52,068 nt of DNA, taken from Corallochytrium limacisporum Hawaii (lineage: Eukaryota > Protista > Pluriformea). Positions 35,876 to 52,068 of this stretch are shown here, in pieces. Every line of letters begins with the position of its first letter. Positions within the stretch are counted from its first letter, which is position 1. The stretch is from the NCBI GenBank assembly GCA_002811645.1, contig PDIP01000062.1, positions 33,965 to 86,032 of the forward strand. The letters are read 5' to 3'. The notes under the pieces are model-generated. The model was not told the DNA's origin. It did no database searches and worked only from the letters and a program-made list of their open reading frames with translations. The position numbers and the translations under genes are program-made.

Positions 35876-38800
35876 ATGAATGGATCCATGCCGGGAGACA
35901 GGGGAAAGCAACCTGCATCCCGGACGGTTCCGGATAGTGATGAAGGGCAAAATGACCAGCTGTCCCCATTACCGCAACGGAAGGGATCATCCAATTCAGT
36001 TCCAGAATCGATAAGACAAGATGCAACAAGAGATACTCGGAATCTTGTGAAGGATTCAGAAATCGACGATATGGAAGCTCAGCCTGCTTCCACTGACAAA
36101 TCAGGCAGCATCAGGGTGACTGCGGGTGACAGTGCACAAGCTGAGTCGTCAGGAATCATGACCAGACTCTGGCAAGCATCGAAGTCAGCATTGGGCGTCA
36201 TGCACATCGGAGGAGAAAATGCACCGCAACAGAACCTTGACGAGGCTGTGCAGAGAATGGGACAGGAAAGATTCACCGTTGAGCCTACTCGAATGTCAGC
36301 AACATCCCACACACTGCAACGACCTCCAATACCTCCACACAAGCCCTCGCTGGCTTTTGCAGATGATGATTTAGGAGAATTTGTCGATCCTGAGTGCGCG
36401 CAATATCGCGAATCTAGTAGTTCCTGGATACAGTCAACGGACGCAGAGCACGGGAGCGGGGATCACAGGGCCCGCCAGCGGTACGAGACATACCGCAGCC
36501 AAGGAGCAGAATCCTTGGTCAGCACACAGAGAGAAAGTCAGCGGAGTGCAGGGTTGGATTTTGACATGGTTAGCGTTAGAGACAGCAACAGAGACGTCAA
36601 GAAAAACGGTCGCAAGGGAAATGTCTGGCGGTCAACATATTCCAACATCAGAAGTTACCTGCAAAATGAGGATGAATTTCTGATGCAGCAGTACGCCCCA
36701 ATCTTAGAGGAACGTGTAGGTGGCATCAGCAGCGTCGGAGCTGGTTCTCGACTCCCTACCACCAAGGCACAACAAGAAATTCAACGTAAACGTGCAGAGA
36801 CCAAGGCTCAAATCGCAATCGATGAAATCCCAGATCCTGCGGAAGTTGAAGACTTGGAATCAATCGGCCTACCATCCAATATGGGCGACTACGCTCGCAA
36901 ACGGAAGAGTGTTGATGAATCTTCGAAGAGTGGTGCCATGAAACAACCCAAGACGGTGAGACACGCTGATCTTGAGCAGGCTGAGGAGACGGAGTCAGAG
37001 TTGAAAAAGAGCCATAGCATTCGTTCAGAAGATTCGGTGGTGTATTTGCCCTTGACTGGTACGGGTGAGTATAAACCCCGGATCAGCTTGGAGTTGATCC
37101 GCAAGCGGTACATGATCATATTTCTTGGTTGGCAACTGTTTGCATGGGTCTTGGCCGTTCTTTTGGTTATCTTTCAGAGTTCAGTCTTCACGGAGATGAA
37201 CCAGATTACTGTATCCAACAGAGGGTCAAGCCAGGAGGATTTCGAAAACCTTATGGAATCTTTTGGTGTCGATGCAGCCACCCCACCGGATCAACATCCA
37301 TTGATCACATACGAAATTGAGCTGAGTGGGTGGCACTGGCTACAAGGCATTTTCCAGGTGAATAGTAGAATGTCATGTACTCTGAGTGAAGAGCAGTGTG
37401 CGGCATTGCAAGTGACAGATGACAGCGACAACCCCTATGGTCTAACCTACTATGTTGCCGTTGCCCATCGACTGCATGGTCAGGATTCATTTTCTTTGAC
37501 CCTGCAGGAAACCCTGGACGATGACGAGGTCGCGTTTTCGGGATTTTCTGACACCGACGACAACCCGAATACGGTGCTCCATAACAGTGTTTGGTACGAC
37601 AAGGATGCCACGGTGGCTCGATTTGAAAAATTCATGGATGTGGAGTCCTGGCGAGTCTTCATGTCTGTTTACAAGGCACCAGAGTCAGCACTCACAGCCG
37701 ATGACTTAGAGGACACAATCACCATCGTGGCACTGGACAAGTCATATCAAATTGCACTTCTAGTCATTTTGTACGCAATTTTGGCGACCTTTATAGCGGC
37801 CTATGCAACATGGTGTCGTTCTTTGTATGTCTATCAATACCAGAAGTGGGATAAGCTGCTCTTGGAACAGCTCCTGTTGGTGATTATGCTGCTTCCTCTG
37901 ATGGTTTGCACGTGTAATCCGATGTACATCCTTAGCGTGGTCTTCATGCCCTGGACCCCGTACTCATTCGGTAGTGCTGTCATCAGTGACATGCAGATCA
38001 TTATCTTGGCGGCCCTTCTGCTTCTCATGCTATTAGTTGCAAGTCCAAGCTATCGCAAACTTTTGAAAACGTACTGGTTTGTCAGCATACTCGTGATCAC
38101 TGGCTTTCTAATTTATGGTGTTGTCGTCGCAGACGACGCATTAATTCTCTTACTAGGTAATGGAGCTATTGATGAAGGTCCGAGCAGTAGCTCCCATGAA
38201 ATCTTCTTGGCTTCCCAGATTCTGAACTACGTGTTCTTTGCTGCATCAGTGCTATATTTCGTGGCCTTGTACAGTGTGATTCGTCTAGTGGGCAAAGATT
38301 TGCACAAACTCCCATACATGGAATTCCGCACGATGCAGCTTGGTTACCGTATGAGCACGCTTATGGCTGTCTTTGTGTGGACATATGCTCTTATATATGC
38401 CATCACCATTGCGATTAACTACGTGGACAACGATCAAATCAACGCTATCGACTACCTAGGTCGACCGTCAATTGGCAACATGTACTTTTACTTTGCATAC
38501 TCAATGGCGGTCATGTACATGTACCTGCCTGCAGTGGCCTCAGGTCGCCGGTTTGAGAAGTACTCACACTTTCGAAAGAATTTCCTCGCAGAAGAAGGTG
38601 AAGTATTCAGTCTAAAGCTTGCTCTGCGTCTTTTAGAATTCGCGGTTGATGTGTACTACGAACCAGAGTCAAAGGGTCTTGATCCGGACTTGACCGTACA
38701 TCCAAAAGAGCTTGGTTATGAGTTGATCGAGCACGTGGACCATGACGGTGCTGACCTGCACTCCATGATACTGATCGATCCCAACGATCCTAATCGACTT

Positions 38801-40642
38801 ATTGTGACTTTCCGTGGCACGTATTCCTCGCAGAATGTAAAGACTGACCTCGATTTTAGACTCAAGCTCCTTCCTGATGCAAATGAGTTGATCGAGACTG
38901 CTGCCAAGAAGCGTAAGGACCGGAACAGAGCGCTTCATGAGCTGGAGAGGTTGGTAGAAAGGGAAGGCTGGGATCTCAATTGCCCTCCATTGGAAGAAAA
39001 GGAAAGCAGCGATGAGGCCTATGAATCGATGTCGTCTCAAACGCGCCTTTCTCGCGCAGCCGCCAGGCTTAGGACATCCCTTCAATCCTCCCTTCTCGGC
39101 CGAAGCTCCAAATCGTCGAAGGTTCACAGTTGCAGCAGTAGCGCTCGTCAGAGCACAAGTCCATCTAGCCATGACGATAAGGACACTCGAAGTAGTGTTA
39201 GCAAAGTACCTACTAAGGACAAGAAGCACAAATCTGGAAGTTCGAATCTTAAGATTTTGGACCTGGACCCCCTTGCGCGAGAGTCCCTGTATCAGCAATA
39301 CTGTCACTATCAGCGCGACCACGATCGTGCACAACTTGAGGCATTGGTAACAGAAGACCGTGGTGCAGTGCTTGATCGCATGATTCCCAATTCGGCGGGC
39401 GCCACAGATGATCTCAATCCGCTGGAGGATCAGAGAAAGGGTGCCACACGAAAGAAGTATGCGACAATGCTTCGAAAGACATCAGTCGATGCCAGTCGCC
39501 ACCTCTCTGAGAATGGTCACGAGAATCAATCGCTTACGGAGACCATCAAGGATCTGACGGAAAGTACCGATGTCGCAGAGACGAAGAGTAGTCAACCGCA
39601 CACCCCAAAGTTTCCGGCTTGGCACAGAGCCTCAGCTGGTGCTACTTTGCTAATTAATCCACATGAAGAGGTCCGTCGTAGCACAGAATCGTCAGCAAAG
39701 CATGACAAGTCCAATGATGCCTATGATCAGAGCAGACCTGAAACCCGGGCTACTGTTATGCATAGACTGCTCCATTACATCGGCGACGTTGAAGAGCGTA
39801 CTGGAGATGCTGTGCTGAATGCGACTACAAGAATTAACAACGCCGCATTGTATCTTGGTCGCCAATTGGGTATCTCCGTAGCACAGCCAAAGGCTCATCG
39901 CGGGTTCCTGAAGGCCTACAGTCGCCTTCATCCTCGCCTGCAAAAGAGCGTTCTCAAGATCCTGGAGGAGCGGGAGATCGACGAGGTCATGGTTTGTGGC
40001 CATTCACTTGGCGGCGCTCTCAGTGAAATTTGTGCTATTTATATGAACCTTTGGCTCCCGCCGCGGCTTCCTGTGCATGTGTACACCTACGGCACACCTC
40101 GTATTGGTAACCAAGCCCTGGTGAAGCTCATGGACGAACTCATTCCTTTCAATTTCCGCTTGGTCAGTGATGGAGACATTGTTACTGCGTGGCATCGTAT
40201 CCACTACCACCCTGGAACGGAGCTGGTGCTGGGTAAGTTTGGCACAATCAACGTCGACCCATCCTTCATTGAGCGATTCTTTGTCCGAAGTCGTTCGAAT
40301 CCTTCTGCTCATGCTTGTTCTGAATATGAGCGGCGTATGGGCTTGGCGTTGGAAAAGGCCCGTGACAAAACCCGCCGGCAGCGCTTGGAGAACATGGATT
40401 CTGACGAAGTCATGGAACGGGTCAAGGAGGCAGCGGAGTTGCAGGACGAGGAAGACCGTCGTCGCTCGACTGTCTTCCACACACCGCGGACCACCATCGC
40501 CAAAAACATCTCCACGTACAACGAAATTGAGGCTGAAACGATCGGAGATGCTGGTATCCTAGGCCATATCCACCGCCACGAGACTGAACTGCGGAACGCG
40601 CGATCGAACGGGCCCAGCAAGGAGCGTAAGGCGTCCGTGTAA
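35876..40642 (+). CDS. Multi-pass membrane protein (TMEM181/Wntless-like domain) fused to a class-3 lipase
   Basis: 1588 aa. Disordered N-terminus, TM at ~37110-37177, luminal domain, ~7 further TMs (~37750-38533) with LEQ..LLPL..CNPMY, LPYMEFR and MYLP. Then lipase elements VTFRGT..TDLDF, AHRGFLKAY, GHSLGG (39998-40015), YTYGTPRIGN, DGDIV, HACSEY. Confidence 0.8.
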   Translation: MNGSMPGDRGKQPASRTVPDSDEGQNDQLSPLPQRKGSSNSVPESIRQDATRDTRNLVKDSEIDDMEAQPASTDKSGSIRVTAGDSAQAESSGIMTRLWQASKSALGVMHIGGENAPQQNLDEAVQRMGQERFTVEPTRMSATSHTLQRPPIPPHKPSLAFADDDLGEFVDPECAQYRESSSSWIQSTDAEHGSGDHRARQRYETYRSQGAESLVSTQRESQRSAGLDFDMVSVRDSNRDVKKNGRKGNVWRSTYSNIRSYLQNEDEFLMQQYAPILEERVGGISSVGAGSRLPTTKAQQEIQRKRAETKAQIAIDEIPDPAEVEDLESIGLPSNMGDYARKRKSVDESSKSGAMKQPKTVRHADLEQAEETESELKKSHSIRSEDSVVYLPLTGTGEYKPRISLELIRKRYMIIFLGWQLFAWVLAVLLVIFQSSVFTEMNQITVSNRGSSQEDFENLMESFGVDAATPPDQHPLITYEIELSGWHWLQGIFQVNSRMSCTLSEEQCAALQVTDDSDNPYGLTYYVAVAHRLHGQDSFSLTLQETLDDDEVAFSGFSDTDDNPNTVLHNSVWYDKDATVARFEKFMDVESWRVFMSVYKAPESALTADDLEDTITIVALDKSYQIALLVILYAILATFIAAYATWCRSLYVYQYQKWDKLLLEQLLLVIMLLPLMVCTCNPMYILSVVFMPWTPYSFGSAVISDMQIIILAALLLLMLLVASPSYRKLLKTYWFVSILVITGFLIYGVVVADDALILLLGNGAIDEGPSSSSHEIFLASQILNYVFFAASVLYFVALYSVIRLVGKDLHKLPYMEFRTMQLGYRMSTLMAVFVWTYALIYAITIAINYVDNDQINAIDYLGRPSIGNMYFYFAYSMAVMYMYLPAVASGRRFEKYSHFRKNFLAEEGEVFSLKLALRLLEFAVDVYYEPESKGLDPDLTVHPKELGYELIEHVDHDGADLHSMILIDPNDPNRLIVTFRGTYSSQNVKTDLDFRLKLLPDANELIETAAKKRKDRNRALHELERLVEREGWDLNCPPLEEKESSDEAYESMSSQTRLSRAAARLRTSLQSSLLGRSSKSSKVHSCSSSARQSTSPSSHDDKDTRSSVSKVPTKDKKHKSGSSNLKILDLDPLARESLYQQYCHYQRDHDRAQLEALVTEDRGAVLDRMIPNSAGATDDLNPLEDQRKGATRKKYATMLRKTSVDASRHLSENGHENQSLTETIKDLTESTDVAETKSSQPHTPKFPAWHRASAGATLLINPHEEVRRSTESSAKHDKSNDAYDQSRPETRATVMHRLLHYIGDVEERTGDAVLNATTRINNAALYLGRQLGISVAQPKAHRGFLKAYSRLHPRLQKSVLKILEEREIDEVMVCGHSLGGALSEICAIYMNLWLPPRLPVHVYTYGTPRIGNQALVKLMDELIPFNFRLVSDGDIVTAWHRIHYHPGTELVLGKFGTINVDPSFIERFFVRSRSNPSAHACSEYERRMGLALEKARDKTRRQRLENMDSDEVMERVKEAAELQDEEDRRRSTVFHTPRTTIAKNISTYNEIEAETIGDAGILGHIHRHETELRNARSNGPSKERKASV

Positions 40643-41302: not shown

Positions 41303-44300
41303 ATGACATGGTACCATGGCAGTGGAAAGAGTGTCCTGCACCAGCTCCTTGAACGTGAGATCAAGCCTGCCAGACCCTCTGCAAATTTGAATCGGGACCG
41401 GTTATTTTACTCCCATCTTTACCCTAACCATACTGTTTTCAACTGTGTAGCTCCGCAGAATATTAGTTTGAAAAAATTTTCACCATGTGGGAAATACATG
41501 ATTGGATATGGTAAGGATGATGACTCTGTTGTCATGTACCGCTTCGAATGGAACAGTTACATAATTCCAGTGGACCCGAACGCAACAGAACAACCGGGCT
41601 GTTGGTCGGGCTCCAGGGAGAAGGGGAAAGTACCGCTCAAACGAGAGAGTAGCAGCAGTGTGAAAACTGAACCTAGTGACCAACAGCAGACTTCAACAGC
41701 ATCCATGTCACATCTGCCGGGCATGACTCGGGGCGGTCAGAACCTGACCCACTCGGACCACAAGGGCATGTCTGAACACGAAGCGTTGAACCCGATGACC
41801 TGTTTCAGCCGCTTTTTCAAGTTCCACTGGCATCGGACTCTCACTCAGGACGATACACAGAAACTTGAGCGTTCAACGTTCTTATTTAGCATGAATTCGA
41901 AGTACGTCGTGTTGGCAACAACATCACCCTGCCGGGCCTTGACCGCTGGCGCGAACCACCCCGACTACACTCCAGAGACAAGACTTGAGGTTGCAAGTGT
42001 GAACTACACGTTTTACTGTCTTTCGGTTCAAACTGGAGAATGTACAGATCGAATTACATTCGAGGGCGACCAGATTCCCCTTGGGCGGCTGAATGGGGTG
42101 TGCATGTTTGATAATGTCTTGGCCGTACTGAGTATCAAGTTCCAGTGCATCCGCATTATTGAGCTCAAAGAAGGTGGCAATTTTGTGCATCTGCAAAAGA
42201 TTGGATGGCTTTGTCACCAAGACGATGAATTAACCTTGAGCAAGTTTGCCACGGATGCTGAAGAGTATGCTCGGGCCTGTAGGCAGGCCTTCAATCCCGA
42301 AGTGTCGAACCCAGGTGCAAATGTGAAGAAGAATGTACGGCCGCTCTATGGTCGTCGCAGGTTGAGCGGATCCTCTGGCCAGGGCCCTAGTTCACGGGCA
42401 ACTCAGCTGGGCACTACATTGAGTCGCATGGGTTCTCTGCCCCCTGCTACCGGGAACCTGGACCAGAATGATGGAAACAGAGGTCGGTCAGCAATCAACC
42501 GGTACGGTAGCGTGAGATCTCGTCTGCGGTCAACACGATCGGCTGAGCCTGGTAACTCCCGTTTAGCACAGTCCGGTAGGGGGCCTCCATATCGCTCCAG
42601 TGGTCAACCAGGCATGCTGAATACCCCAGGAATGGATCCTGGTTCTGGACGGGGATCTACAAGCTCACAAAATGATGATGCCACCATGGATGTAGATGCA
42701 GATGGAAACCGTCTTGCCTCATCTTCGGTTGGCAACGGGGAGGAGGCTGTCGATCTTCCGAACATTGGCATACTCCAACAATTACTTGCAAGTCGTCTAA
42801 GCAACCGCATGGGACCGCAGAATCCGCCTCCAGTTGGGCCCAGGCCGCGTCCCCCAGGTCCTGCTCGTGCTCCTGTGCCGGGTCCAGCTCCTGTGTACCG
42901 ACCACCTGCTGAGGAAAGCGAGGGGCCTCGTCGTCAGGCCAGTGGTGGCCCTACTAGTCAGACCAATGGGGGCTCCACTGGGCAGCAGAGTGGATCACAA
43001 GGATGGAGCAGTTACCCAGGACGTGCGCGGGAAGGACCCACAGGGAACGGTCAAACAGAGGAAGCAAGTCAGCAGTCATTGAATGCGGGAGTTCCACGGC
43101 CCGCCGCGGGCACCGCCCAAGGCCAAAACCCAAGTACACTATTACCCCCAAGCCGAAATATCGGTCAGCCGCAACAGGGCCCGCAATCACAGCCATCACA
43201 ACCACAGGACCAGGTGCAGCAGCCACCAGCGCCAAATGCGAACTCGGGCAGTGGAGGTACGGAGGTCAATTCAACGAACTTTCCGGGGCTGAGCAACGTG
43301 CGTATTGTTCGTCGCCGAGCTCAGAGTCGCGCATTGTTCATCATTGGTGGTGATGGGCGTCGCAACCAAGGCAGCGCTGGTCAAAGCACGAGTGGCACTG
43401 ACGGTCTCACAGGAGGCACGGGCATTGGTCCGGTGGGGCAAAGTTCCTTGCTAGGTGGTCTTAAGCACCGCATTCTAACGCACCTCTATCGTCTGGCCAA
43501 GAACGATCCTCGTGACCCCGTGCATGCTGTCCGACGCTTCCGGGCTCTGTTCAAGGAATTCGAGAATATGGTGATGGTGCAACAGCAACTGATAGGCAGG
43601 GACCATCTGTTGATCCGGTTCGTGAATGTCAAAGCAATTGGCATACCGCAGCGGTCATCATCGAACGACACGCAAGTGATCATGTTTGTAGTCTACAACA
43701 TGACCGAAGCTAAGGTCGTCGGCTGCTACGACAACACAAGCGAGGAGTTCCTTGCCAAGATGGAAGCCTCCTGCGATATTCTGCGCAGCACCACTTTCAC
43801 AAAGCCCGTAAATTTTGTGTCGACCTGCAGCAGCAACCTGTACGCCCGGGACGCCATTTATCGGAACCGCAGCACTGTGCGCACTGCCCGCCACGGAGGC
43901 CGAGAAGCTGCAGTGCGACGGTTCTTGAACGTCCTACCCTTTATGTCGCAGTGCTGGAGCGACTCACCATATTTTGACCAGAACATATTCTATTACGATG
44001 AGAAAGGCTGCAATGCCGCGGAACGGCCCAAGCCGGTCAGCGACTTCCCCGTGAAGTTCTACTGCCGTGGCTCCGGGCGTCTAAAGTTCAAAGTCCACAC
44101 ACAATTCAGTGCTGTCGATAACGGCAATGGCAACGGTTCCTGCCGCAAGAAGGGAGCCGTCTGTTTCCTGTTCCACCCGATCTACCCGTTCCTGCTGACC
44201 CTTAACTTTGGACACGAGGGATGGTTGATTAATATCCAGTGCCGCCATGAACCTGCGACTGGTGTGCCTGGCAGCGCGAATCTCGCAACAGCTGAGAATA

Positions 44301-44464
44301 GCACCGGGGTCGACGGAGATAATGCAGCAGCTGCAAGGGCGGCCCAGACAGCCCCAGCCAACGGTCGCAGTCCCACGGAGGAAAGGAGCAGCGGCGAAGA
44401 AGGTGGACGTGAGAACGAGGTCAGTAGTCCCACCGGCAGCGGCATGAACCTGCCTTACGATTGA
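41303..44464 (+). CDS. DET1: DET1 homolog (CUL4-DDB1-associated) with a large low-complexity insertion
   Basis: HQLLEREI..RLFYSHLYPNHTVFN, LKKFSPCGKY, LAVLSIKFQCI, IGWLCHQDDEL, GLKHRILTHLY, FVVYNM, VRRFLNVLP..Q..SDSPYFD, FLFHPIYPF. Confidence 0.92.
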   Translation: MTWYHGSGKSVLHQLLEREIKPARPSANLNRDRLFYSHLYPNHTVFNCVAPQNISLKKFSPCGKYMIGYGKDDDSVVMYRFEWNSYIIPVDPNATEQPGCWSGSREKGKVPLKRESSSSVKTEPSDQQQTSTASMSHLPGMTRGGQNLTHSDHKGMSEHEALNPMTCFSRFFKFHWHRTLTQDDTQKLERSTFLFSMNSKYVVLATTSPCRALTAGANHPDYTPETRLEVASVNYTFYCLSVQTGECTDRITFEGDQIPLGRLNGVCMFDNVLAVLSIKFQCIRIIELKEGGNFVHLQKIGWLCHQDDELTLSKFATDAEEYARACRQAFNPEVSNPGANVKKNVRPLYGRRRLSGSSGQGPSSRATQLGTTLSRMGSLPPATGNLDQNDGNRGRSAINRYGSVRSRLRSTRSAEPGNSRLAQSGRGPPYRSSGQPGMLNTPGMDPGSGRGSTSSQNDDATMDVDADGNRLASSSVGNGEEAVDLPNIGILQQLLASRLSNRMGPQNPPPVGPRPRPPGPARAPVPGPAPVYRPPAEESEGPRRQASGGPTSQTNGGSTGQQSGSQGWSSYPGRAREGPTGNGQTEEASQQSLNAGVPRPAAGTAQGQNPSTLLPPSRNIGQPQQGPQSQPSQPQDQVQQPPAPNANSGSGGTEVNSTNFPGLSNVRIVRRRAQSRALFIIGGDGRRNQGSAGQSTSGTDGLTGGTGIGPVGQSSLLGGLKHRILTHLYRLAKNDPRDPVHAVRRFRALFKEFENMVMVQQQLIGRDHLLIRFVNVKAIGIPQRSSSNDTQVIMFVVYNMTEAKVVGCYDNTSEEFLAKMEASCDILRSTTFTKPVNFVSTCSSNLYARDAIYRNRSTVRTARHGGREAAVRRFLNVLPFMSQCWSDSPYFDQNIFYYDEKGCNAAERPKPVSDFPVKFYCRGSGRLKFKVHTQFSAVDNGNGNGSCRKKGAVCFLFHPIYPFLLTLNFGHEGWLINIQCRHEPATGVPGSANLATAENSTGVDGDNAAAARAAQTAPANGRSPTEERSSGEEGGRENEVSSPTGSGMNLPYD

Positions 44465-47283: not shown

Positions 47284-50200
47284 TTAACTTGGTGGGGACG
47301 GATGCTTTAAAGGACATGTGTTCGCTGGCTTTCGAGTCTCACCGGGAGTGCTCCCGTCCTGGAATGTGACGGCAACATGGTCTCCCCTTGCACCCCTGGG
47401 ACTGTTGTCTCTACTGTTGTCGTAGTAATCGTCCTCCATATAGGACAACTCATCCTCCTCTGGCCAGTCCAGGTCCTCCATGTCCAGTAGACCGGGAGTG
47501 ACGGCGTCGCAGCCACCAGCATCCAGGTTACACACATCTTGCCGCGGCACACGCTCCACGTAAAAGTCGCCTACTAGATCCACAGTGTGGATGCCGCCTG
47601 CGAACAAAGGCACGCGCACCGGACCATCACCGCCTGCGGTGGTATCAATTGCGCGACCGAGATGAACGCTGCCCTCTCCTAAGCGACGCTTAGGTTTAGG
47701 TGTTTGGAACACGCCGTGAGCCTTGCTCGAGGCAATGGTTAAGGCAAAGCGGAAGGACTGCTGACGCACGTAGTCAAGGCCGGAGTAGAGCATGTGTACA
47801 CGGACGGTGAATGGTTCGGTATCGAGGTCTTTCATGAACTTGCCACGGGCCGCAACACCGTCACCGTCTAACATCAAGAACATACCTTCCTTGTGGCCGA
47901 CGCCGGCTATCTTGCGCACTTGATCAAAGTCACGGATTTCAACCCGAGCGTCCTGGCTCATAACCGCAGGCATGCTCATGGCATAATCGTCCCCAATTTG
48001 GCTCTGAATGGGAGCCAGGCTGGTGTCATCCATAGTGGGAACATCCAGATTTGAGTTCTCAGCTTGGGTGGGTATTTCACTTAGAGTGCTATCGAGATGA
48101 GCGACATCACGGTTCCGCTTGTTCTTCTTCTTCTTCTTTCTTTGCGATGCCTTGTTCTTCAACTGCACCAGCGCACCAACCTTCAGATCCGAGGCGCCCG
48201 GTACGTGGTAGCCATAGATGACGTCCACACGGCAGTTCTTTATGGTTACCACAATTTCATAGCCCAGAATTGAGGCATTGACCAACCGATCAAGATTCTG
48301 TGGCGCCAGTGAAGGCACAATGGTACTAATGGGCTCAGTAGGTGGTTCCAATTCAGTCTCCTCATCCATTTCGTGGGTTTGATCCTGACTCTCTGCTACC
48401 TTAGGCTCGCCTTCGTCCTTAATCTTCTGTAACCCCACCTCTAAGGACTCAGCTCGGGGGGGGCTGAGCGTTCGCATCTGCTTCTCCGGGAGCGTAGAGT
48501 CGTTCCCGTTTAGTGACACTAGTCCTCCCTGCTGTGACCGGACGCTCGGTGTACGCTGGACACCTGGCCGAGGGCTAGGTGCCCTCGGACTAGGTGCCCT
48601 CGGACTTGTTCCTCTGGAACCGGTACCCCTAGGACTGGGCCCTCTTGAACCGGCCCCTCTGGGGCTGGGTGCCACCTGGTTGGTACCCTTGGGGGTGTAA
48701 CCCTCAGATCTGGCCGATACCTGAGACGGAACAGCGGACAATGCAAGCGGAACCGCCGTCTGGAGAGGATCCACCCAGTCGGTGGGCAAAGGAATGCGAA
48801 GGGTGAACTCGGCGTACACTGGGCGGTGGTCACTCGAACGAACTGTCTCACAGCTACCGTACTCATCACACTGTACCTCAATACCCTCCCTTGCACTCCA
48901 GAGCACACGATCGCACCAGGCAGGGATGCGGGCTGATTTTTCATCGTAGAAATCACTGTCACGATTGAACTTGTAGGTAGGTGCAAAGTCTATGGCAGCC
49001 TCCTGGAATCCATACCATGCTTGGCCGCTTTGACGCACCTTGTTGAGTTGATCGTGTTCCTGAATTTCGGACCATTGGCCTCTGCCCAGGCGCACTCTTG
49101 TGTTCAGTTCCTTGACCTCGTCGAATCCAACTTGGTCAATGCGATAGTTGAGATCACCCATGAAAAAGGTGCAAGCGTGCAGCAGGCGAGTCGGGCGCCA
49201 ATCCCAGTTGGGCAGGCGCAGCTTGTGGATTATTTGATAGTAATCGTTATTACGTTCTGCAACCTTCTCCTGGTGTGCAGCTAAATGCGCACCAATAAAG
49301 CACAGAGTTTGGCCCATCACCTTGATGCTAATAGCAATTCCACCCTTGTTGTAACCTACGCCACCCAATAGGCCCGTCTTCACCAGATTGGTATGAATGG
49401 TACCAATCCATGGTACTAAGAAACTTGTGGCAAATATCACTAGTCGAATACCTGCCGTTTCCTGTACCCTATCGCGCACGTCCACACCGGGGATCCAGCT
49501 AACCAAACTTTTACCGCCATTCGCGTACTTCTTTTGACGGGTCACGTCGTCGTCAAGGTCCTGTTGCTGACCCAAAATGGTCAATGTCTTCACCAGCCGG
49601 TAGTCATCACCTAACCCTTTCATCAAGGCCCCCATCAAGTTCTTTTCCATCGAGGGATGACTGTAGGTGGCCTCCTGCAGTGCAATACATACCAAGTCTG
49701 CGGAGGTGCCGAGCCAGTCGCGCAGATTCTGCGACGGCTCTGCATTGCCCATGTTCCATGTACCGCAAAAAATTGTCAATGGATAGCACTGAACGCCCTG
49801 CTCGCCATTCTCTCTGAACCCTGCTTCTCGTCCCATTGATGCGCCTTTGTTGTCAATGTATGAAGTGTCATTAACAGCGTCTGTGCCACGCAAAAATGAA
49901 GGATCCGTACCCTTCATACTGTCTGCGACGTCTTTGGCGGCGTTGCTGTCGAGAGCATGGGCCCAAGTTTTGTTGGGGATCATTGCGTTGGCTGCAATCT
50001 GGGTATCGCTGTCTGAGGGAACGGCCTGCATTCCATTGAGACCCATACGGAGCAGTTTGCGCTGTTGCTGTACCAATCTCGCCATTACAGCTTTGTCCCT
50101 TTCCCGTGCCTGCTTTAGGGTGAAGATGGTAACATCCTGCACCCGTAGATCGCTGGTGATGGAATCAATACTAGTGTGCAAATTGTCCAACTCTGCCAAA

Positions 50201-50967
50201 CCCGTGTCCTCCCATTGCATCAACGTTGGTGCCGAGCTCAATCGACGATTTGCCAGTGCAAATAGATGCCCTTCAAACATACGCAGCGGCCGCGTGATCT
50301 TGAACATCAGTGCAGCGAAAACGCCAATGGTGATACACACCTGAATGAAGAGGGCAAGAATGCGCCCAATAATTTCAATGGTGTCATCGTCGGAATCCTT
50401 GGCTGATACGAAACCAGAGATCATGAAGAAAAAGAAGAACACGCAAGTCCACACAATCATTAGCCGGTTGGTGTTCCACTGAACACAGGACAGACAGCGA
50501 CAGAATACAAGATCATCGCAACATCCTCCACAGCACCCAGTTCCGGTGTAAGATCCCTTGGTTTTGGCAAGCGCAGGATTCTGGCCTGTTGCCCGCAAAT
50601 AATCTGCTGCATCTAGAGTCGGCCGTTGCTCCATTCCCAGAGCGTACAAGTCCTCCTGGGTTAGTGCCTGCAGATCGGGTTGACTTGACACTCCCGGATG
50701 CGTGCCACTTGAAACCTGTCCTGTTGTTTCCTGGTACCGTGCGCGTACCGGAGTGGGAGGCATTTGTACAGTATTCGACTGCTTTCTTGCTCGCTCCCTA
50801 TTGCCATTCTGCGCGTCCGGCAGAACTGACATGGGGATATTTTGATCCAGCTCTGCCATTCCGTGGGGCAGTTCAAATTTCGTTATATGATGGGGTAACA
50901 ATTTCTCGTTTTGGTCCTTACCATTGCCCGTGGGACTCTCGTTACTGCTGCCCGACGACGAAGCCAT
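47284..50967 (-). CDS. Membrane-anchored SHIP-like inositol polyphosphate 5-phosphatase: 2TM-HAMP-coiled coil-IPPc-C2
   Basis: IPPc motifs IFCGTWNMGNAEP, ALQE, NKGG, AHLAAH, FMGDLNYRI, PTYKF, PAWCDRVLW, SSDHRPV (~48790-49790). C-terminal C2-like region. N-terminal two TMs followed by a HAMP-like segment. Confidence 0.88.
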   Translation of the reverse strand: MASSSGSSNESPTGNGKDQNEKLLPHHITKFELPHGMAELDQNIPMSVLPDAQNGNRERARKQSNTVQMPPTPVRARYQETTGQVSSGTHPGVSSQPDLQALTQEDLYALGMEQRPTLDAADYLRATGQNPALAKTKGSYTGTGCCGGCCDDLVFCRCLSCVQWNTNRLMIVWTCVFFFFFMISGFVSAKDSDDDTIEIIGRILALFIQVCITIGVFAALMFKITRPLRMFEGHLFALANRRLSSAPTLMQWEDTGLAELDNLHTSIDSITSDLRVQDVTIFTLKQARERDKAVMARLVQQQRKLLRMGLNGMQAVPSDSDTQIAANAMIPNKTWAHALDSNAAKDVADSMKGTDPSFLRGTDAVNDTSYIDNKGASMGREAGFRENGEQGVQCYPLTIFCGTWNMGNAEPSQNLRDWLGTSADLVCIALQEATYSHPSMEKNLMGALMKGLGDDYRLVKTLTILGQQQDLDDDVTRQKKYANGGKSLVSWIPGVDVRDRVQETAGIRLVIFATSFLVPWIGTIHTNLVKTGLLGGVGYNKGGIAISIKVMGQTLCFIGAHLAAHQEKVAERNNDYYQIIHKLRLPNWDWRPTRLLHACTFFMGDLNYRIDQVGFDEVKELNTRVRLGRGQWSEIQEHDQLNKVRQSGQAWYGFQEAAIDFAPTYKFNRDSDFYDEKSARIPAWCDRVLWSAREGIEVQCDEYGSCETVRSSDHRPVYAEFTLRIPLPTDWVDPLQTAVPLALSAVPSQVSARSEGYTPKGTNQVAPSPRGAGSRGPSPRGTGSRGTSPRAPSPRAPSPRPGVQRTPSVRSQQGGLVSLNGNDSTLPEKQMRTLSPPRAESLEVGLQKIKDEGEPKVAESQDQTHEMDEETELEPPTEPISTIVPSLAPQNLDRLVNASILGYEIVVTIKNCRVDVIYGYHVPGASDLKVGALVQLKNKASQRKKKKKNKRNRDVAHLDSTLSEIPTQAENSNLDVPTMDDTSLAPIQSQIGDDYAMSMPAVMSQDARVEIRDFDQVRKIAGVGHKEGMFLMLDGDGVAARGKFMKDLDTEPFTVRVHMLYSGLDYVRQQSFRFALTIASSKAHGVFQTPKPKRRLGEGSVHLGRAIDTTAGGDGPVRVPLFAGGIHTVDLVGDFYVERVPRQDVCNLDAGGCDAVTPGLLDMEDLDWPEEDELSYMEDDYYDNSRDNSPRGARGDHVAVTFQDGSTPGETRKPANTCPLKHPSPPS
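48568..48673 (-). repeat. Coding tandem repeat giving five SPR motifs
   Basis: Encodes APSPRGAGSRGPSPRGTGSRGTSPRAPSPRAPSPR (30- and 15-nt units). Confidence 0.85.
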
Positions 50968-52068
50968 GTTTTCAGGTATTTACTTAATACTCCATGTTGA
51001 CTCTATTTTCTAGGTTCTACATTTTCCTGTCCAGGTCTACTTCTGACACTTGGACACGTTTATATTGTTCTCGTTTTACAAGCCCTTAAATATGATGACT
51101 TCTCTCGTCAGTTTTTGTACCCTGAAATGGTTCAAAGTCGTGGCGATGCCAAGGAATTTCCATTATCACAGACCTGTTCGAATGAGAACTGTCTGTTGGC
51201 CCATTGTGACCTTTCAAGCTCTGCAGTGGCTAAATGCCATGAATATATTTTGGAACCAAGCTACTGGAACCTTACCAGTAGCCCATTACTGCCTGAGACC
51301 TTGGAACCGCAATGCTCTCTTCGGCGGGCTCAGTGTGGCCGGTCGTACGTTCCCAACTGGTGTCGCGGGGTGACAACACACGCCCCAACGAAAGACCCAT
51401 ACTGCCACTGCCGAGCTTTGGCGGGGGACCGATCCTGGGTGCCCCTGCAATTTTCAAACTTTTTTTTTTCCTTTCCTCTTAGCGCGCCGCTGTCGTGTCT
51501 CATTTCATTTTGAACCTGCCTTCCTACGCGCGTCCTGGGTGAAGAAACGTACAGACATGTCGAAGCACATGTGTATGAGGAATGCCTACTTAATGTATTA
51601 TTGTTTATACCTCCCACCTATGCGAAATCCGCTGAAAAAATGGCGGACGGAAGAAGGGATGACCCGAAGGAAGGGGCCTGAGGGAGATGGGCGGGGCACG
51701 TCGAAGACCCGCGGGCGCGGGGGCTAAAAATGGGATCTGCACGCAGAACCCGCAAAAAAAAAGAAACTGAGCGGAGGGTGTGTTTTGTTGAAATCTCTGT
51801 CTATTTGTGCGCCGATCTTTGGAACCCGAATCAAAGGAACCATAGCAAAACTGTAAGCATGCGCCAAACATGTGTAGCCAAGAGCACTGTGATAGGAACG
51901 GGAGTTTCCCTTGAAATTGCCATCGAATGGGGAAGGTGGGCCACTTCAGTACTCTGTCTCGTAATGAGAGTGGACACTACCACCCTCTGTCTGAGAATAT
52001 TGTATCAAATCTACTCATTTTGATTTAGCTCTGCCGTCGCTTGGGAGAGCGGGAAAATTTTGACAGAT

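Follow-up and report, generated by a model that had tools for sequence, protein, structure and literature searches.

Does a single-celled relative of the animals control phosphoinositide turnover with a membrane relay of prokaryotic type? The question is raised by P0001, an open reading frame of the marine holozoan Corallochytrium limacisporum that lies on the reverse strand at positions 47284–50967 of the window (the whole 52,068-nucleotide stretch of DNA that was analyzed), as do all of the features described below. A sequence-only reading had proposed that its product is a receptor-like inositol 5-phosphatase in which two transmembrane segments and a HAMP domain gate an enzyme followed by a C2-like domain. 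The coordinates and motifs underlying that proposal hold. With about even confidence, we take the product to be an integral-membrane PI(4,5)P2 5-phosphatase whose transmembrane–HAMP portion is mainly a dimerizing and positioning stalk and whose enzyme is flexibly tethered.

The catalytic portion is an inositol polyphosphate 5-phosphatase of the SHIP-like clade (residues 396–728; 48784–49782), which matches PF22669 over residues 402–719 with an E value of 1e-59. As had been claimed, the enzyme is intact: the motifs of 5-phosphatases of the EEP fold are present (WN, QE, HL..H, GDLNYR, PTYK, PAWCDR, and SDH.PV), as are the active-site residues N405, E432, H561, D605, N607, Y665, R687, D713, and H714. 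A phosphatase tree places P0001 in the SHIP-like phosphatase-C2 clade (support of 97/93), on a long branch (1.15) and with no resolved position inside the clade. SHIP enzymes have a long L4 loop with an Arg/Asn that reads the 3-phosphate, and OCRL and INPP5B have a Lys/Arg pair (PMC5550278). The L4 loop of P0001 has 19 residues, as compared to 27 in SHIP1, and carries K677 and R680; it is as short as that of OCRL and INPP5B and has their Lys/Arg pair, unlike the Arg/Asn of SHIP. Given this loop, and given that the single PI3-kinase found in the C. limacisporum genome reads as Vps34, the substrate is probably PI(4,5)P2. PIP3, which had been put forward beside it, is unlikely on the same two grounds.

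The proposal of a C2-like domain was also correct. Residues 896–1142 (47542–48282) form a C2 domain that is split by a disordered insertion at about 931–1020, within which lies a polybasic patch (residues 936–955; 48103–48162). Foldseek matches to this region were mostly C2 domains, and the best VIA-align match was the phosphatase-C2 of SHIP2 (Z of 10.4, rmsd of 2.5 Å, 116 residues aligned). Sequence profiles by themselves did not detect the domain (p ~0.03); it was found by fold search alone. The protein ends in an acidic, disordered tail (residues 1143–1227; 47287–47541; FoldIndex −0.23), disorder being predicted here and below from composition only.

At the opposite terminus of the protein, an N-terminal tail (residues 1–140; 50548–50967) that is predicted to be disordered (FoldIndex −0.055) is followed, just before the membrane, by a cluster of cysteines (C145, C146, C149, C150, C156, C158, and C161, within residues 141–167; 50467–50547) that are candidate sites of S-acylation. 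Hydropathy and coordinates bore out the two transmembrane segments and the acidic loop that had been read between them: TM1 (residues 168–189; 50401–50466) has a Kyte–Doolittle 19-mer peak of 2.41 and is modeled as a helix with a pLDDT of ~85; the outside loop, KDSDDDTIE (residues 190–198; 50374–50400), has nine residues, five acidic and one basic; and TM2 (residues 199–222; 50302–50373) has a peak of 2.56 and runs on into the first helix (AS1) of the HAMP-like segment, forming one helix from 194 to 244 in a single-chain structure model. These are the only strong hydrophobic segments in the protein, and so short a loop leaves no room for an extracellular sensor domain, as had been noted. The tail would be cytoplasmic, and the N- and C-termini would both lie on that side of the membrane.

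What, then, is the segment that follows TM2? Residues 223–276 (50140–50301) probably constitute a divergent HAMP domain, judging from profiles, shuffles, and ESM features, with AS1 at about 224–243, a connector at 244–257, and AS2 at 258–275. The segment opens with KITRPL at residue 223 (50301), and the sequence ITSDL ends at residue 274. Two amphipathic helices in the hydrophobic register of HAMP were found directly C-terminal to TM2: all ten near-invariant core columns are hydrophobic (I224, L228, F231, L238, L243, L260, L263, I267, I270, and L274), and the proline that starts AS1 and the glutamate that starts AS2 are present as P227 and E259 (column conservation of 84%/70% and 94%/83%, respectively). 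Two HAMP profiles, one of 90 bacterial HAMPs and one of ~88 Cache-HAMP-cyclases, whose segments are true HAMPs (Af1503 matches, E of 7e-5), align the segment in one register through both helices. The combined profile gave 17.5 bits, a score reached by none of 3000 shuffles with the transmembrane part held fixed, by two of 3000 with ITRPL fixed, and by 48 of 3000 with AS1 fixed. Compared with control segments, the P0001 segment outscored nearly all (the own-genome set numbered ~33), at 16.5 as against a maximum of 10.1 among 128 non-HAMP post-transmembrane segments. When ESM features were compared without the transmembrane segments, HAMP was the top match (0.93) and accounted for 22 of the 30 matches.

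Against these results, the segment falls below every library threshold, and the HAMP assignment of the sequence-only reading stands on register, landmarks, shuffles, and controls and fails on library search. Pfam (PF00672 clan) returned no match at E values up to 10, short of the curated cut-off; NCBIfam and PDB sequence searches were blank; and hhalign gave a probability of only 31%. Matches to DUF7626, DUF2975, and T6SS were at chance level. These scores can be compared with those of P0159, a genuine Cache-TM-HAMP cyclase of the same genome, whose HAMP is likewise missed by Pfam and is equally weak (13.2 bits) on the canonical profile. The segment is divergent. Only the glutamate of the DExG motif is kept (AELD), the connector glycine is replaced by R241, the connector has an insertion of about four residues, and H234, L235, and H264 occupy mostly small-residue positions. 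DExG is reported to be necessary for coupling membrane signals into canonical HAMPs (PMC3570549). Cyclase-type HAMPs also lack DExG and the connector glycine, and hence their absence from P0001 excludes only the canonical subtype.

An alternative is that P0001 has no HAMP and is simply a membrane-anchored 5-phosphatase, its membrane hairpin being followed at residues 223–311 by amphipathic or coiled-coil helices of an ordinary kind. The blank library searches fit this view, as do fold searches with the single-chain model, which matched no HAMP structure; that model, from a single sequence (pTM of 0.35), contains long helices only. C. limacisporum also encodes a histidine kinase with a TM-coiled-coil arrangement, which scored 13.4 on the combined profile and 19.3 on an extended one. 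Separately, a SIDDIT match in an own-genome kinase was discarded as resembling a PAS-associated motif. ESM scores of 0.9 or above also occurred in 4%–10% of shuffled proteins, the shared-feature counts for P0001 (137–142) were below the 170 typical of family members, and AS2 contributed nothing to a profile of the HAMP core only (1175/2000). Other transmembrane-anchored 5-phosphatases exist in the genome. Against it stand the full two-helix register with both landmarks and the shuffle and control outcomes; the helix of the model is broken at 245–248, within the expected connector; and the pattern occurs in none of the other 5-phosphatases among 158. We consider this alternative fairly unlikely. 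If residues 223–276 are a HAMP, then P0001 is implied to be a homodimer.

The pairing of HAMP with an inositol lipid phosphatase was not found elsewhere. Searches with residues 135–400 or 150–330 against 5.8 billion and 1.84 billion proteins, limited by a length window, word seeds, and a single-sequence query, recovered P0001 itself only. Scans of metagenomes, prokaryotes, plasmids, and viruses returned generic phosphatase domains only or nothing, and no paper on HAMP joined to a 5-phosphatase turned up. P0009 resembles P0001 in having N-terminal transmembrane segments, a phosphatase, and a C2 domain; it has no HAMP signal.

The sequence-only reading did not mention two spacers, one of 84 residues (312–395) and one of 167 residues between the phosphatase and the C2 domain. 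The former (49783–50034) is probably disordered (FoldIndex −0.02; pLDDT below 50 for 314–330) and occupies the position of an apparent PH-like domain in SHIP-clade relatives. The latter (residues 729–895; 48283–48783) is of low complexity, with five SPR motifs at 768–800.

Between the HAMP and the first spacer lies a basic helix (residues 277–311; 50035–50139), modeled as helical over 281–312 with a pLDDT of 56–71; that it is a coiled coil was not borne out (hydrophobic-moment p of 0.14). Because the 84 residues that follow probably form a disordered linker separating the helices from the enzyme, direct gating by the HAMP is doubtful, and from linker length a dimerizing and positioning role is likelier. 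We envision an origin in a SHIP-clade phosphatase-C2 enzyme from which the modules for N-terminal recruitment (SH2 and PH) appear to have been lost and to which the membrane part of a two-transmembrane HAMP receptor, without its outside sensor, appears to have been added. TM-HAMP, together with the helix after it, would mainly act as a dimerizing stalk that sets the position of the enzyme; the phosphatase would hang from the flexible tether; the C2 domain and its polybasic loop would dock it on acidic lipid; and the docked enzyme would convert PI(4,5)P2 to PI4P. Any control by the HAMP would most likely be indirect, through dimer state, clustering, or release of the tethered enzyme, rather than by rigid rotation into the active site.

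Alternatively, P0001 could be a true receptor: the HAMP would be switched by input at the transmembrane pair or from a partner protein, and the helix downstream of it would relay this to activate or inactivate the phosphatase, in the manner of SaeS. The topology is that of SaeS (PMC4388633), P227 and E259 are retained, TM2 continues into AS1 as a single helix, cyclase-type HAMPs likewise do without the D and G of DExG, and SHIP enzymes are regulated via C2 contacts (PMC5550278), such that a tethered enzyme could be held or released. The post-HAMP helix, however, ends near residue 311 and gives way to the disordered linker, and the lost DExG and connector glycine, together with the residues at mostly small positions, also count against a working switch. 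Catalysis by 5-phosphatases is, moreover, not known to require dimer symmetry. We judge the receptor unlikely. That P0001 is a HAMP-gated phosphoinositide phosphatase, an intramembrane-sensing receptor of prokaryotic style directly controlling PI(4,5)P2 turnover in a close relative of animals, is correspondingly doubtful.

Finally, the gene itself appears sound. It is a single stop-free frame of 1227 codons without introns, in DNA free of gaps and joints. Contigs that a tool guessed to be RNA ("transcriptome-like") span 47290–51060, at 47319–48902 and 48910–51058 in sample X3 and at 47290–49319 and 49292–51060 in sample X4. They begin ~93 nucleotides upstream of the ATG, with the flanks uncovered in both samples, and the leader holds two tiny upstream frames (50984–51022), M-stop at 51022 and MEY-stop at 50995. 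In the second sample there are 16 synonymous and five non-synonymous changes, none of which alters the protein from TM1 through the HAMP. Continuity from membrane to phosphatase, at issue in the earlier reading, is evident from single contigs that contain the junction in both samples. The lack of homologues of the N-terminal module might point to a chimera, made in assembly or annotation, of two genes, one for a membrane protein and one for a phosphatase. Such a chimera is effectively refuted by the unbroken frame and by sequence that crosses the junction both in the DNA and in the two RNA-like assemblies, which are independent, and it is very improbable.

The known outputs of HAMP domains are histidine kinases, cyclases, chemoreceptors, and protein phosphatases; lipid phosphatases would join them if P0001 is HAMP-gated. 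If the HAMP call holds, P0001 is a naturally occurring fusion in which a lipid enzyme specific to eukaryotes carries a membrane relay of prokaryotic type, in a holozoan that can be cultured and has a sequenced genome. It is a test case for whether HAMP can signal across a flexible tether and a further possible route from membrane sensors to PI(4,5)P2 levels, beside voltage-sensing phosphatases and GPCR-INPPs. The weight of the finding is limited by its confinement to one species, by weak HAMP scores, and by the putative nature of gating.

How does P0001 compare with known systems? Its phosphatase groups with SHIP1 and SHIP2 (INPP5D and INPPL1) and protist phosphatase-C2 relatives, and its C2 domain is nearest that of SHIP2; unlike SHIP, it is integral to the membrane, has no SH2 (by Pfam) or PH domain, and has the long spacer ahead of a split C2 and the short Lys/Arg loop. 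SaeS, an intramembrane-sensing histidine kinase, has two transmembrane segments, a nine-residue outside linker, and a HAMP but no sensor domain (PMC4388633), a plan that P0001 shares, although its output is a long-tethered lipid phosphatase instead of a HAMP-continuous DHp helix and no homology in sequence was shown. Cache-TM-HAMP class III cyclases, of bacteria and here P0159, share with P0001 the lack of DExG, a hydrophobic residue two before the glutamate, a Leu-Arg end, and a longer connector (landmark spacing of 32 in P0001, 31 in P0159, and mostly 27–30 in canonical HAMPs), whereas P0001 lacks the Cache domain, the cyclase, and the cyclase transducer element. Descent from that family is not established, because the canonical profile scores equally well. 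Ci-VSP, with its PTEN fold, four-helix voltage sensor, and short linker, is unrelated to P0001 by sequence. It is an analogue in how it works: a phosphoinositide phosphatase with a C2 domain is coupled to a membrane sensor that is a dimer (PMC5940254, PMC6298786). Similar in plan are the GPCR-INPP bigrams of oomycetes and Nannochloropsis, in which a receptor-like membrane module lies N-terminal to an inositol polyphosphate phosphatase, with putative control by ligand (PMC5784254, PMC6033456); the phosphatase clade of P0001 also includes 7TM-phosphatase-C2 proteins of marine metagenomes. P0001 has the same N-terminal fusion but differs in having two transmembrane segments and a HAMP-like segment instead of 7TM and in coming from a holozoan instead of a stramenopile. 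The suggestion that the architecture was undescribed thus stands for the pairing of HAMP with a 5-phosphatase and not for receptor-like 5-phosphatases as such (PMC5784254); given these receptor-fused enzymes, the new element of P0001, if the HAMP call holds, is the HAMP.

The gene at window positions 47284–50967 (minus strand) is real. It is a single open frame of 1227 codons in the assembly of the unicellular holozoan C. limacisporum (24,109,830 bases, 286 contigs), and it lies inside one contig of a DNA run. In each of two further runs, whose RNA status is a guess, a single contig extends from approximately 51060 to 48910 or 49292. These RNA-like contigs leave the flanks uncovered, contain no introns, and span both transmembrane (TM) segments and the HAMP-like segment into the phosphatase, in keeping with a transcript that is continuous over the membrane–enzyme junction. 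A second sample differs from the window gene by 16 synonymous and five non-synonymous changes, numbers too small to gauge selection on the HAMP; the stretch from TM1 to the HAMP is unaltered, and R288Q sits in the next helix. A marine metagenome contig matches positions 48269–48528 with one difference, which is common to the second strain, and the organism is therefore present at a low level in seawater samples. The neighboring genes are eukaryotic and unrelated: a sterol reductase, a DET1 homologue divided by a long low-complexity insertion (41303–44464, plus strand), and a multi-TM protein of 1588 residues with a class 3 lipase domain at its C-terminus (35876–40642, plus strand).

The sequence-only reading proposed two TMs with a short acidic loop, and the protein indeed has two strong hydrophobic segments (residues 168–189 and 199–222) on either side of a nine-residue loop, five residues of which are acidic. 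The flanking sequence, with seven cysteines just ahead of TM1 and basic residues after TM2, suggests that both ends of the protein lie inside and that the cysteine cluster is S-acylated.

Residues 223–276 quite probably form a true HAMP domain, with helices AS1 and AS2. Searches of Pfam, NCBIfam, and PDB sequences gave no HAMP match. We also counted against a HAMP the result of hhalign (probability 31%, E 5e-4) and a predicted single-chain structure that was uninformative on the point. Two profiles were built, one from 90 bacterial HAMPs (15 genomes) and the other from approximately 88 Cache-TM-HAMP cyclases collected with C. limacisporum's own such cyclase, a set that matches the Af1503 and NarQ structures. 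Residues 203–275 adopt the same register under both, with a connector insertion of four to five residues. The segment agrees with the profiles at each of the ten near-invariant hydrophobic columns and at P227 and E259, but lacks the canonical connector glycine and the D and G of the DExG motif. With the combined profile, the real score was reached by none of 3000 shuffles when the TM was held fixed, by two of 3000 when ITRPL (the start of AS1) was fixed as well, and by 48 of 3000 when all of AS1 was fixed. A HAMP-core-only profile gave weaker results (5, 24, and 1175 of 2000, respectively), and hence most of the HAMP signal resides in AS1.

The segment scored 16.5, as compared to at most 10.1 for 128 non-HAMP post-TM segments; the three segments that scored above 16.5 were cyclase-family members excluded from training by a length filter. 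Of approximately 130 further controls, only two scored higher, namely the HAMP cyclase of C. limacisporum itself and a bacterial ORF that presumably encodes a HAMP. A TM–coiled-coil kinase was close, at 13.4 on the combined profile, and exceeded the segment on a profile that included kinase residues. ESM features placed HAMP first with the TMs (0.91) and without them (0.93), scores to be taken as leads. Pfam likewise misses the genome's genuine cyclase HAMP, whose score with the canonical profile is 13.2 bits. The proposal of a HAMP after TM2 stands as to core register, P227, E259, shuffles, and controls, but not as to library matches, connector glycine, and DExG; that the segment is instead a plain helical anchor seems unlikely.

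The cyclase in question (P0159, locus L184; contig G000:C235, approximately 88553–92119) is a Cache-TM-HAMP class III enzyme; most of its nearest named relatives are from bacteria. A similar TM cyclase (L187) has a more degenerate segment. The genome also encodes at least ten histidine kinases (L164–L173), several with TMs and outside domains; no clear HAMP was seen in them within the stretches examined. Among eukaryotes, HAMPs have been described in fungal and amoebal poly-HAMP kinases (PMC13446029).

The intact 5-phosphatase and C2-like domain of the sequence-only reading were both borne out, the latter from a structural model. Pfam PF22669 matched residues 402–719 (E 1e-59), all catalytic motifs are present, and the best PDB matches were OCRL and SHIP1. 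In a 38-sequence tree the phosphatase grouped with SHIP1 and protist phosphatase-C2 proteins (support 97/93), on a long branch whose sister within that group was not resolved. Sequence profiles failed to detect the C2. A model of residues 895–1145, of low quality overall (mean pLDDT 49.7, lowered mostly by a disordered insertion), nevertheless matched almost exclusively C2 domains in Foldseek, and an unbiased fold search ranked the SHIP2 phosphatase-C2 first (Z 10.4); the underlying alignment consisted of relatives' post-phosphatase regions, and the fold match is thus not fully independent.

Judging from the L4 loop and gene content, the enzyme more probably acts on PI(4,5)P2 than on PIP3. In SHIP2, the 3-phosphate is recognized by R682, which sits on a long L4 loop, whereas the loop of INPP5B is shorter and carries K516 and R518 (PMC5550278). 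Here the L4 loop is short (19 residues versus 27 in SHIP1) and holds K677 and R680. A search of the genome gave only two PI3K accessory-domain matches. The stronger (L248; G000:C175, 227019–230525), the sole PI3-kinase found, reads by its motifs as Vps34 with long low-complexity insertions; the second pairs with a 2255-residue frame consistent with a PI4-kinase. A genome search run without a positive control found no PI3K Ras-binding domain. No class I PI3K was seen in the genome, which would be unusual for a holozoan if confirmed.

The output helix of a HAMP usually continues directly into the effector in known receptors. Here a basic helix extends to approximately residue 311 and is followed by 84 residues predicted to be disordered and then by the enzyme; 167 residues lie between phosphatase and C2. 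The best reading, in which we place middling confidence, is that the TM-HAMP region would act as a dimerizing membrane stalk that positions a tethered PI(4,5)P2 phosphatase, with HAMP control at most indirect. Gating of the phosphatase by the HAMP, as the sequence-only reading had it, would find an analogy in SaeS, with its two TMs, nine-residue loop, and HAMP (PMC4388633), but is improbable in view of the predicted-disordered stretch and the missing D and G of DExG, a motif reported to be necessary for canonical HAMPs to receive membrane signals (PMC3570549). Cyclase-type HAMPs, however, lack DExG as well.

Protein and metagenome searches returned no homologue of the N-terminal module, and none of 158 other 5-phosphatase sequences gave a HAMP signal. 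Of the six 5-phosphatases encoded in the genome, three are embedded in the membrane. One (L005, G000:C201) is tail-anchored, and another (L007, G000:C184) is divergent, with C-terminal TMs and GNFNYR replacing GDLNYR. Apart from these, another membrane-anchored SHIP-clade enzyme (P0009, with a 16-member cluster) has N-terminal hydrophobic helices, a PH-like region, 5-phosphatase, and C2, and P0009 has no HAMP signal. Three proteins of 1735–1739 residues from ENA marine metagenomes (P0136, P0137, and P0145), GPCR-INPP-like and placed in the SHIP-like clade, combine a predicted seven-TM part, which by eye resembles class C GPCRs, with a coiled coil, a PH-like region, 5-phosphatase, and a C2-like region.

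In a literature search that fell short of most subscription journals, no paper was found with both a HAMP domain and an inositol polyphosphate 5-phosphatase. The combination of a HAMP-like segment with an inositol 5-phosphatase appears to be new and is so far seen in one species. Receptor-fused inositol phosphatases as such are already known in the GPCR-INPPs (PMC5784254, PMC6033456); the voltage-sensing phosphatase is a functional analogue of the protein, and SaeS shares the layout of its membrane part.
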